Assembly (NCBI GenBank): GCA_964199315.1
Contig: OZ116706.1
Location: forward strand, 13,578,001 to 13,642,000
DNA: 64,000 bases
Reading direction: 5' to 3'
Source: Orbicella franksi
Taxonomy: Eukaryota
Shown in pieces: positions 20,095-21,605 of the stretch. Position 1 is the first letter of the stretch; each line of letters starts with the position of its first letter. The translations under genes and the position numbers were made by a program. The notes beneath the pieces are model-generated. The model did not search any database. It saw nothing but the letters and a program-made list of their open reading frames with translations, and had not been told where the DNA came from.

Positions 20095-21605
20095 TTAATT
20101 TGAGCTTAGTTTGGACAAATTTAGTAGAGCATTTGCAGCATCGTTAAGTTCAGTTCGCTCATTGTCATCATTTCCTTCACTCGTGGAAAGTGTCGCTCGG
20201 GTGATAGTTGCGCTGGGTTTAGTTTGCGTACCATGCAAGTACAAGTTGCTTTCCTTCAGTGCAGCGGCCAGTTGCTCCTCTTCGTCTTCGACTGTTAATG
20301 GTTGGAGTTCTGTGCCAGTTGAATAAGATTCGCTAAAAGTAAAGCTAAGCAGCGAGTCTACGGGTTTATATTGCAGAGGTTCAGGGGTTTCTGAAGGCCA
20401 TTTAAAGCCTTTTAATTCCCATAAAGTTCGCACGGGATTTCCTTGGTGTGGCACTTGGTAGCTTTCTAGCATTATCTTCTTGTCATATTCCGTCAGTGCC
20501 TCAAGTAAGCTGACCCCAACTGGGGGAATTTTTCCTTTAAAATGCGATTCAAGTTTCTTTAAATCCTTGTTAACCTGACGCCAGTTTTCAAACCCTTGAG
20601 TATTTAGGTAGCGTGGCTTGCACTCGTTAGTCAATCACGATCACATAAGACTTGAGAATGAGTTTGATGTTTGATTCTTTAGTGCTATCTTCATTGACAA
20701 AGTGTTTTGCAGTTTCTCAAGACCTTTCTTTGCATTGTTCAGTTCGTTAACTGCGCGAGAAACAACATCTTTTTCATCTTTGTGTTTGCTTAAGTCACCA
20801 GAAAATTCTGCTGATTAGCAAGGGTGAGCTTTGTACAGGCAGTTGACACGATTGTGCCTTTCATGCCGATGACAGTTGGTACAAGAAGGTTTCGAATAAT
20901 CGATCCCCGCATGTTTGCCGTATCTAGCCATCAATCGCTGTACTTCCTCTTCTTTTTCTGCCACCTTTTTCCTCTCTTTTTTTACTTCTTGTTTATCTGA
21001 TATGAGGAGATCCAAGGGGGACATATAATGATTTGATCATGGCCCACGATTTAGCGCACTGTTTTCGGGCAAATCGCCTGTTCTAACTCGGCGCTGTTGT
21101 TTTCGAGGTGGAGATAGATAGGTTTTGCTTGTTCCAATGTCAGGAATCAGATCATCTTCAGAAGAGGTGTTGGGTAGAGATTTCGGAGTAGACGAAAGAA
21201 GCAGATGTTTTGAGCAGTTCTCGCCAAATTTGAGTTTTCTCTTCGAATCTCTGTCTGTTGCGCTTCCCTCTCTCATCTGCTGACGCTTCGCGGAAATTAA
21301 CTCAGGTGTTGATTTAGGTTGCCACATGATTTTTATCTTTAAACAGCGAAATGTCATTCCTTGCACTTTGGAAGCACAATGCCAAGCATCATGGAAGGAG
21401 TCTTCGGGCGTATGGTTACCAACATGTTCTCATCATCCATGTACAGTACTCGTAGTTCCGTGTCAGGTATAAACTGTAAACTCTCAGTTTTACCTCTAAT
21501 TACTTGCATGAGATCTTCAAAATTCGGTATTATACTTTCGGTGAAGATGACTTCACACCTGTCGACTCCTTCTGGGATGCTATAAAAAACTTTTAGCTGC
21601 AACAT
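20095..21605 (-). pseudogene. Transposon ORF2 (about 503 aa reconstructed): PB1-like, S/P-rich linker, Cys/His motifs, coiled coil, UIM-like
   Basis: ORF pieces 21354-21605, 21037-21366, 20815-21024 and 20095-20634 join with one frameshift (about 21405) and four in-frame stops (21037, 20815, 20641, 20635). The last three pieces share one frame. Confidence 0.8.

Follow-up and report, generated by a model that had tools for sequence, protein, structure and literature searches.

Does a Tc1/mariner transposon carry, next to its transposase, a second gene by which it could engage the ubiquitin and chromatin machinery of its host? The question is raised by a locus in Orbicella franksi (assembly GCA_964199315.1, contig OZ116706.1, positions 13,578,001 to 13,642,000 of the forward strand), a stretch of 64,000 nucleotides that we refer to as the window. 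We confirmed that positions 20095-21605, minus strand, are the decayed second gene, here called open reading frame 2 (ORF2), of a two-gene DD37E Tc1/mariner transposon. An earlier note on this DNA had described ORF2 as a ubiquitin/chromatin adaptor with a PB1 domain, zinc motifs, a coiled coil, a ubiquitin-interacting motif (UIM) and a Sin3-interaction-like terminal helix. Our analysis established the gene, its family, its linkage to the transposase, the selection acting on it, the PB1 fold and the conservation of the motifs; the explanation of the protein as an oligomerizing adaptor, in which all binding partners, like the sign of the effect, are deduced, has in our view roughly even prospects as a whole.

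The host element of ORF2 is a 3.5-kb Tc1/mariner transposon of the DD37E, DDE_3 type. Its inverted-repeat arms (18305-18427 and 21677-21799, 123 nt each including the TA) are 92% complementary. Both arms open with TA-CTACCGAAACAGG and the flanking sequences outside them are unlike, which delimits the element to 18307-21797 and indicates that TA was duplicated at the target. A DDE transposase with a putative triad in the DD34-41E/D range, terminal inverted repeats and a TA duplication, by which Tc1/mariner elements are recognized, were all found, whereas the single-gene layout that is typical of these elements, without defining them, was not: two genes lie within one repeat pair. The transposase gene and ORF2 are convergent in the window, and each begins 40-70 bp inward of its own repeat. 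The parts of the element other than ORF2 are as follows.

18305-18306, no strand: left TA target-site duplication (the repeat alignment starts with TA at both ends).
18307-18427, plus strand: left terminal inverted repeat, 121 nt (arm complementarity; same terminal letters in locus L002).
18469-19536, plus strand: transposase of the DDE_3 / IS630-Tc1-mariner type, 355 amino acids, intact (Pfam DDE_3, NCBIfam, homologues).
21677-21797, minus strand: right terminal inverted repeat (arm complementarity, alignment of the ends).
21798-21799, no strand: right TA target-site duplication (repeat alignment).

The window transposase matched Pfam DDE_3 at 1.5e-13 and NCBIfam IS630 at 1.1e-14, the latter under the cutoff, and had 58 homologues, the named ones being from Porites, Oculina, Montipora and Paramuricea. 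We counted by eye 37 residues from the second Asp to the Glu, from the DNCATH to the TEF motif, and the catalytic triad is assigned provisionally from this spacing. The 64-kb window contains no N and no further copy of the element, and the public sequencing runs that contain the element are coral metagenomes; together with the named transposase relatives, this marks the host as a stony coral.

ORF2 belongs to a large family. In word searches, its C-terminal piece retrieved 21 homologues and the N-terminal piece of a less decayed copy 23. Furthermore, an exhaustive profile search with 13 members against 1.84 billion representatives, in which the counts are of clusters at 50% identity, gave 672 matches at E<=1e-3, of which 313 reached E<=1e-10 and 62 E<=1e-30. 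Many members are uninterrupted proteins of 460-590 amino acids, and a form of 517 amino acids is present unchanged on more than 10 contigs. Between two other copies of ORF2, the ratio of nonsynonymous to synonymous substitution rates (dN/dS) was 0.11 in the PB1 part and 0.30 in the C-terminal part; purifying selection acts on the family. The named members are all anthozoan (Porites, Oculina and Exaiptasia). One entry, P0089 (Oculina patagonica ACROYT_G014358), is a gene model that fuses part of an ORF2-family PB1 to unrelated sequence and is probably a mis-annotated transposon fragment.

The family is linked to a transposase. Ten loci (L001-L010) were reached via ORF2 proteins, and a DDE_3 transposase adjoins ORF2 in nine of them (L001-L005 and L007-L010); the tenth contig stops 117 bp past the gene. 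In the window and in L002, L005 and L008, one pair of inverted repeats encloses both genes, and the terminal letters of L002 are the same as those of the window element. The gene order in L005 is divergent, not convergent, and ORF2 and the transposase are still linked there. Besides, transposase and ORF2 identities give the same grouping (window, L001 and L002; L004 and L008; L007; L005), which persists though transposase identity drops to 33-36%, and no ORF2 homologue without a transposase was seen wherever the flank was long enough. This linkage and the matched grouping make it very unlikely that ORF2 is a passenger or a chance open reading frame. As regards the other loci, L008:5962-10686 is a two-gene element with 165-nt repeats 98% alike and both genes open, probably a young copy and possibly an active one; in L004, inverted repeats are nested densely around the element (794-2664 and 6813-8566; 49 pairs, up to 367 nt) and its ends are not callable.

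In the window, ORF2 starts with an 83-codon frame from the ATG at 21605, and its features are the following.

21582-21605, minus strand: peptide MLQLKVFY (translation).
21403-21605, minus strand: first part of the PB1 domain (strands 1-4, helix 1, start of the OPCA motif) in the first frame (translation, homologues, model).
21411-21455, minus strand: peptide LRVLYMDDENMLVTI (translation).
21402-21403, minus strand: frameshift, one base short relative to other copies (RNA reads and contigs put in a G behind 21402).
21373-21402, minus strand: peptide DSFHDAWHCA, in a different frame (translation).
21310-21402, minus strand: last part of the PB1 domain (helix 2, last strand) (translation, alignment).
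21310-21342, minus strand: peptide LKIKIMWQPKS (translation).
21040-21309, minus strand: linker predicted as disordered (predicted local distance difference test, pLDDT, below 50 in the homologue model; alignment).
21088-21114, minus strand: basic patch SPPRKQQRR within the linker (alignment).
21037-21039, minus strand: first in-frame stop; other copies have a plus-strand G at 21039, giving an Arg codon (RNA contigs and reads).
20895-21021, minus strand: first long helix of the predicted helical hairpin, from SPLDLLISDK (P0090 model, helix 175-208; pLDDT 95-98).
20839-20883, minus strand: peptide CTNCHRHERHNRVNC (translation).
20782-20883, minus strand: putative zinc module, broken by the second stop, one Cys being replaced by Ser (86-sequence alignment).
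20815-20817, minus strand: second in-frame stop (translation).
20635-20649, minus strand: third (20641-20643) and fourth (20635-20637) in-frame stops, reading LM*S* where relatives have MRSR (alignment).
20392-20634, minus strand: second half of the predicted helical core, ending GNPVRTLWELKGFKWPS (homologues, model).
20248-20289, minus strand: UIM-like motif EDEEEQLAAALKES, an acidic run and then L-x-x-A-x-x-x-S (conservation, PDB profile search).
20113-20148, minus strand: C-terminal amphipathic helix LNDAANALLNLS, resembling Sin3-interaction domains (SIDs) (conservation, published PAH2 motif).
20095-20097, minus strand: stop codon of ORF2.

The peptides quoted in the earlier note were all recovered at their minus-strand places, the UIM-like one at exactly 20248-20289, and the N-terminus that it had repaired across the frameshift is what intact homologues read. 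The damage in the window copy amounts to one frameshift (21402/21403) and four in-frame stops; in addition, a zinc-ligand Cys is lost (AEFSGDLSKH, against AEFCGDLNKH in relatives). The extra base after 21402, and G, not A, at 21039, were seen in contigs from RNA libraries and in a few polyA reads, all with the same species label, so that the window copy alone bears this frameshift and the first of the stops; relatives have Gln/Lys, Arg and Arg at the remaining three stops. Arginine thus stands in relatives at three of the four stop positions, at one of them as CGA in other copies according to the reads, which is consistent with CpG decay. The transposase frame of the window copy is wholly open and 95% identical to P0022, as against five disabling changes in ORF2. 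Transcription of ORF2 is thinly attested: one polyA run gave 20 read mates and another none, and some of the contigs span the whole of ORF2. An intron was considered where, in L002 and L003, 96 nt separate two pieces of ORF2, and was dropped: P0017 and others read through, and L002 is frameshifted after CTNCHRREGHN.

What, then, does the intact gene encode? The N-terminus is a PB1 domain. Pfam PB1 (PF00564) was matched by all 17 aligned N-termini at E<=0.1, the best at 2.1e-8, and the N-terminus of P0087 scored 31.4 bits, above the gathering cutoff of 23.6. The window fragment by itself reached 15.2 bits (E=0.021) and is sub-threshold because the frameshift cuts it. Family profiles run against PDB sequences retrieved the PB1 domains of Cdc24 and NBR1 with E-values down to 1e-4, reached by NBR1, whose PB1 is the nearest solved one to the family profile in sequence. 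The AlphaFold2 model of the domain (pLDDT 84.6; predicted template modeling score, pTM, 0.71) is a beta-grasp in the order strand-strand-helix-strand-strand-helix-strand, and Foldseek ranks 1-9 for it are all PB1 structures (p40/p67phox, Par6/aPKC, Cdc24, NBR1 and the p62 complex; E 1.5e-4 to 4e-3). The beta-grasp N-terminus proposed in the earlier note was therefore borne out by Pfam, AlphaFold2 and Foldseek on intact homologues.

The acidic YxDDE motif singled out earlier turned out to be a conserved OPCA motif, accompanied by a conserved beta-1 lysine. Its consensus in 86 family sequences is Y-x-D-D-E-G-D-aromatic-V-x-L...D-x-F-x-D/E, with Y/F in 49 of 56, D/E in 51, 40 and 44 of 56 at the acidic columns, and then Gly and Asp. 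Basic residues occur at beta-1 (K/R, 32 of 40) and at the start of beta-2 (R/K, 42 of 45), and in the model these would form the basic face of the domain. Since the beta-1 Lys and the OPCA motif are both present, the PB1 is of type AB. The type-AB PB1 domains of p62, TFG and others permit head-to-tail polymers, and by analogy the ORF2 protein may polymerize in the same manner.

Beyond the linker, eight near-invariant Cys/His residues in the 86-sequence alignment follow the pattern C-x2-C-H-x4-H-x4-C-x5-C-x5-C-x5-H. In the AlphaFold2 model of P0090, the closest near-complete homologue, a long antiparallel helical hairpin carries them in a loop at its tip, and after the hairpin comes a small helical bundle, whose end is an invariant stretch, NP-x-[KR]...G-[IV]-x-[FW]-P; pLDDT in this core is 95-98, and the loop, as modeled, would hold two zinc ions. 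Pfam and NCBIfam gave no family for the core in the window pieces, nor did Pfam in ten full-length members; Foldseek with the core model returned nothing, and a wide VIA search returned generic helical hairpins only. As predicted with confidence by the model, the core is a previously undescribed new domain of no known family or fold. A CCHC zinc knuckle (C-x2-C-x4-H-x4-C) was rejected as its identity, the actual spacing being C-x2-C-x5-H-x4-C with four more conserved ligands and no zf-CCHC match, as was a ZZ finger, for which the window pieces and the ten full-length members gave no match at E<=1. The two items that had been listed separately, Cys/His motif and 'PC...KH' segment, are both present, as parts of one eight-ligand module and not of two, and the segment called a coiled coil is helical, its shape being the confidently predicted hairpin.

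The tail beyond the core is predicted to be disordered save for two helices, the first of which, in the P0090 model, is the UIM-like helix. The UIM consensus (an acidic run, then phi-x-x-A-x-x-x-S-x-x-acidic) is present in the window, and the pattern recurs in divergent relatives of 20-50% overall identity as LKTALIES, VANAIQES, LALGIQES, LEIALQAS and LKLALSAS. In its loose form it occurs in 41 of 46 tails, compared with 12% of shuffled tails, and in its strict form in 13 of 46, compared with 1.6%. Furthermore, a profile of the 28-residue UIM segment run against 177,635 distinct PDB sequences gave seven matches at E<=10, of which six are solved UIMs, with E-values of 0.036 and 0.18 for Vps27, 0.18-0.32 for RAP80 and 2.4 for Hrs. 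Judging from its sequence, the helix probably binds ubiquitin, a claim that we hold with some, not high, confidence. One subfamily (P0092, P0097, P0105, P0121, P0181 and P0198) has D-F-[RK]-[LM]-A-[VIL]-x-L-Q at the UIM site, and CG-x-CH-L-[KR]-x-GH, not CTNCHRREGH, as its zinc loop. Its motif D-F-R-L-A-x-x-L-Q looks like the inverted form of UIM, known as motif interacting with ubiquitin (MIU), a likeness that beyond Leu-Gln rests on what we take to be the MIU consensus. The Leu and Gln of MIUs are highly conserved (PMC5824887).

The second helix lies at the C-terminus and is predicted at a pLDDT of about 60 only. The pattern A-[AV]-x-[A]-L-[LMVI]-x-L was found inside the last 25 residues of 28 distinct members, and 20 of 46 tails carry the strict tail pattern, which appears in 0.2% of tails after shuffling. 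When 26 diverse tails were aligned, two columns were invariant and two near-invariant, with A-[AV]-x-A-L-[LM]-x-L as the family consensus. Helices that bind the PAH2 domain of Sin3 are of two kinds (PMC1557813; see also PMC8657803 and PMC3293586), one with A[AV]X[VA][LV], as in TIEG1/2, HBP1, Ume6 and BTEB4, and one Mad-like with an LLXXA core (PMC1557813); the SID of SP1-like proteins is phi-phi-X-A-A-X-X-phi, similar in shape to the LLXXA of Mad (PMC1557813). About 22 of the 26 diverse tails carry AANAL, AASAL, AVNAL, AAIAL or AAAAL, which fit A[AV]X[VA][LV], and the divergent members P0103 (LVHAADLL) and P0126 (LFSAAQFL) fit phi-phi-X-A-A-X-X-phi. Thus, the terminal DAANALLNL that had been likened to Sin3-interaction helices has a conserved AAxxLLxL that fits the published PAH2 motif. 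This match of 5 to 8 residues is suggestive of Sin3 binding, which we consider possible rather than probable. In the distant member P0154 (L005:1033-6691, GCA_013332695.1; 587 amino acids), the PB1 and the core are kept, and about ten Gly/Ser/Ala/Met/Phe-rich repeats like GSPGSAGAMF, a low-complexity tail that is possibly condensate-forming, replace the UIM and the tail.

How might these parts work together? Intact proteins of about 460-590 amino acids keep a fixed order of PB1, basic disordered linker, zinc/helical core, disordered stretch, UIM-type helix and C-terminal helix. We propose that the ORF2 protein would act in trans alongside the transposase as an oligomerizing adaptor. Its PB1 would form head-to-tail polymers or dock onto host PB1 proteins, the conserved core would bind the transposase or the transposon ends or DNA, the UIM would read ubiquitin on host or transposon proteins, and the tail would recruit a host co-repressor, the best candidate being Sin3 PAH2, with the net outcome that transposition is regulated or targeted. 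In its most far-reaching version, a widespread Tc1/mariner lineage would own a ubiquitin receptor and co-repressor adaptor that polymerizes through PB1, ties the transposase or DNA to ubiquitin (for example, at excision breaks) and to Sin3/histone deacetylase (HDAC) chromatin and so controls where or how often the element jumps, with the core as a new fold family; we offer this version tentatively and hold it to be doubtful.

Several results weigh against the adaptor explanation. The UIM-type segment of the window scored 12.8 bits (E=0.11) against Pfam UIM (PF02809), below the cutoff of 21, and five homologue segments gave no match to it; the UIM claimed at 20248-20289 is thus upheld by its consensus and by conservation at 20-50% identity and falls short of the Pfam threshold. 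The E-values of the UIM profile in PDB are weak as well (0.036 at best), and it is their ranking that counts. The tail profile retrieved no solved SID from the PDB sequences and one unrelated match (ELKS); most SID peptides are absent from the PDB sequence library because they are shorter than 20 residues. The five-residue PAH2 motif is of low information. Besides, P0154 (L005) is without the UIM and without the tail helix, the window copy of ORF2 is non-functional, and the RNA evidence for ORF2 is thin, with RNA-library contigs that may derive from DNA. On the whole, each structural element named in the earlier note passed its check, and what did not hold were membership in the p62/NBR1 family, the Pfam UIM threshold and a match to a solved SID; the polymerizing scaffold that it proposed, which would modulate transposase turnover or host silencing, stays a hypothesis.

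The strongest alternative is that the ORF2 protein is primarily a transposition cofactor, whose zinc/helical module binds the repeats or the transposase for synaptic-complex assembly or nuclear import, the UIM and tail being secondary or incidental. The Myb-like protein of PIF/Harbinger is a precedent for a required cofactor of this kind. In conservation and in the confidence of its predicted fold, the core indeed ranks first among the parts, with its eight Cys/His and a pLDDT of 95-98, and P0154 retains the PB1 and the core where the UIM and tail are gone; ORF2 strictly co-occurs and co-diverges with the transposase, and the SPPRKQQRR patch of the linker is possibly a nuclear localization signal. 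However, the transposase owns a paired-like DNA-binding N-terminus (PAX or helix-turn-helix Pfam matches in relatives), and Tc1/mariner transposases are known to function alone. Moreover, both tail motifs are conserved islands amid disordered sequence that is not conserved elsewhere, an argument for selection on them. We rate a pure cofactor as unlikely, yet as an alternative to be taken seriously.

Less probable still, and in our judgment improbable, is a counter-defense decoy, in which the same modules would act with the opposite sign and titrate Sin3/HDAC, factors of ubiquitin-dependent silencing or degradation, or PB1 proteins such as autophagy receptors of the p62/NBR1 type, thereby protecting the transposase or the expression of the element. 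The sequence gives no distinction of a recruiter from a decoy, and a host partner is not among the findings; the domain evidence cited for the adaptor supports a decoy equally. From the PB1 interactions of p62, NBR1 and aPKC it is known that type AB can cap or join polymers, so a type-AB PB1 would be able to do this to host PB1 polymers, and the best solved relative of the family profile is the PB1 of NBR1.

That ORF2 is a host gene fragment captured once by transduplication, with no role for the element, is very improbable because selection and linkage disfavor it. ORF2 is under purifying selection, is kept where the transposases are only 33-45% identical and after the gene-order change in L005, has intact 517-amino-acid copies on many contigs, and has no homologue without a transposase where the flank sufficed; in favor of a passenger, hosts typically have modules such as PB1, UIM and co-repressor motifs, and the PB1 of plant MUGB was probably gained by transduplication (PMC8616336). 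Finally, the idea that ORF2 is no gene at all and consists of chance open frames in transposon spacer DNA, to which the stops and the frameshift of the window copy might point, is refuted by hundreds of homologues, intact copies, a dN/dS well under 1 and confident folds.

As to its surroundings, the element is inserted in a reverse-transcriptase frame of the long interspersed nuclear element type (16916-18322), which resumes beyond the element at 21882-22188. Directly downstream, at 22769-26312 and beyond, lies the gag-protease-reverse transcriptase-RNaseH-integrase frame of a Gypsy-type long terminal repeat retrotransposon, with long open stretches.

Tc1/mariner elements are a model of self-sufficient cut-and-paste transposition and a tool of gene transfer, in which the transposase alone suffices. 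If the ORF2 protein is an oligomerizing adaptor, such supposedly minimal elements may engage the host ubiquitin and chromatin machinery through the three host-interaction modules (PB1, UIM type and SID type) of a second gene, and this raises the testable question of whether, through an adaptor of their own, DNA transposons sense the state of ubiquitin and of chromatin in the host. The family also adds a sizeable set of uncharacterized proteins with a confidently predicted new domain, and is a rare case of PB1 in a mobile element. In the open literature, Repbase and subscription journals being outside this scope, we found no description of a PB1- or UIM-bearing accessory gene of Tc1/mariner; this suggests that, two-gene DNA transposons being known, the present accessory protein family is undescribed in the searchable literature.

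Among host proteins, p62/SQSTM1 and NBR1 have the same module order, from PB1 through a zinc module to a C-terminal ubiquitin-binding element, and the ORF2 PB1 has both faces, as that of p62 does. They differ in carrying a ZZ finger and a UBA domain, whereas ORF2 has a non-ZZ zinc module, a UIM-type helix and a co-repressor-type tail; outside PB1 the sequences are unrelated, and ORF2 is encoded in a transposon. Like ZZ, UBA gave no match at E<=1 in the window pieces and the ten full-length members, and because it has neither, the ORF2 protein is not a member of the p62/NBR1 family. The earlier remark that ORF2 recalls p62/NBR1 accordingly stands for the module order and fails for family membership, the zinc module matching no known family. 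The UIMs of Vps27, Hrs and RAP80 share with the ORF2 motif the acidic run and phi-x-x-A-x-x-x-S on an isolated helix, but ORF2 proteins have a single UIM copy, and some members have Gly or Val in place of its central Ala. Similarly, the SIDs of KLF/TIEG, HBP1, Ume6 and SP1-like proteins are short amphipathic helices with the residue pattern of the ORF2 tail, and in SIDs of the HBP1/KLF16 type A-(A/V) precedes the hydrophobic residues (PMC3293586); the ORF2 helix differs in its place, the very C-terminal end of a protein without a recognizable DNA-binding domain, and the likeness is one of sequence.

Among mobile elements, extra open reading frames in the Tc1/mariner superfamily are found in ciliate Tec/TBE (PMC7325037), and Fanzor is carried by Mariner elements (PMC3627910). 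Together with PIF/Harbinger, these two-gene DNA transposons resemble the window element in having a second conserved gene inside the repeats that co-evolves with the transposase. Their accessory proteins are unlike ORF2, which has PB1, the core, the UIM and the SID-like tail and no recognizable DNA-binding or nuclease domain. The DD37E families TRT, L18 and Mosquito have been named (PMC10379824). They share with the window element the D..D-37-E spacing, the TA duplication, the inverted repeats and DDE_3, a likeness of features. To our knowledge, these three families consist of single-gene elements, unlike the window element. PB1 is described as 'usually not associated with TEs' (transposable elements), with the domesticated plant MUGB as an exception (PMC8616336). 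In this MUSTANG-B group (MUG7/MUG8), the only association of PB1 with a transposon that we found in the literature, PB1 is fused to a domesticated Mutator-like element (MULE) transposase and so lies within a domesticated plant gene, whereas the PB1 of ORF2 stands at the front of a protein distinct from the transposase, in animal elements that are mobile.

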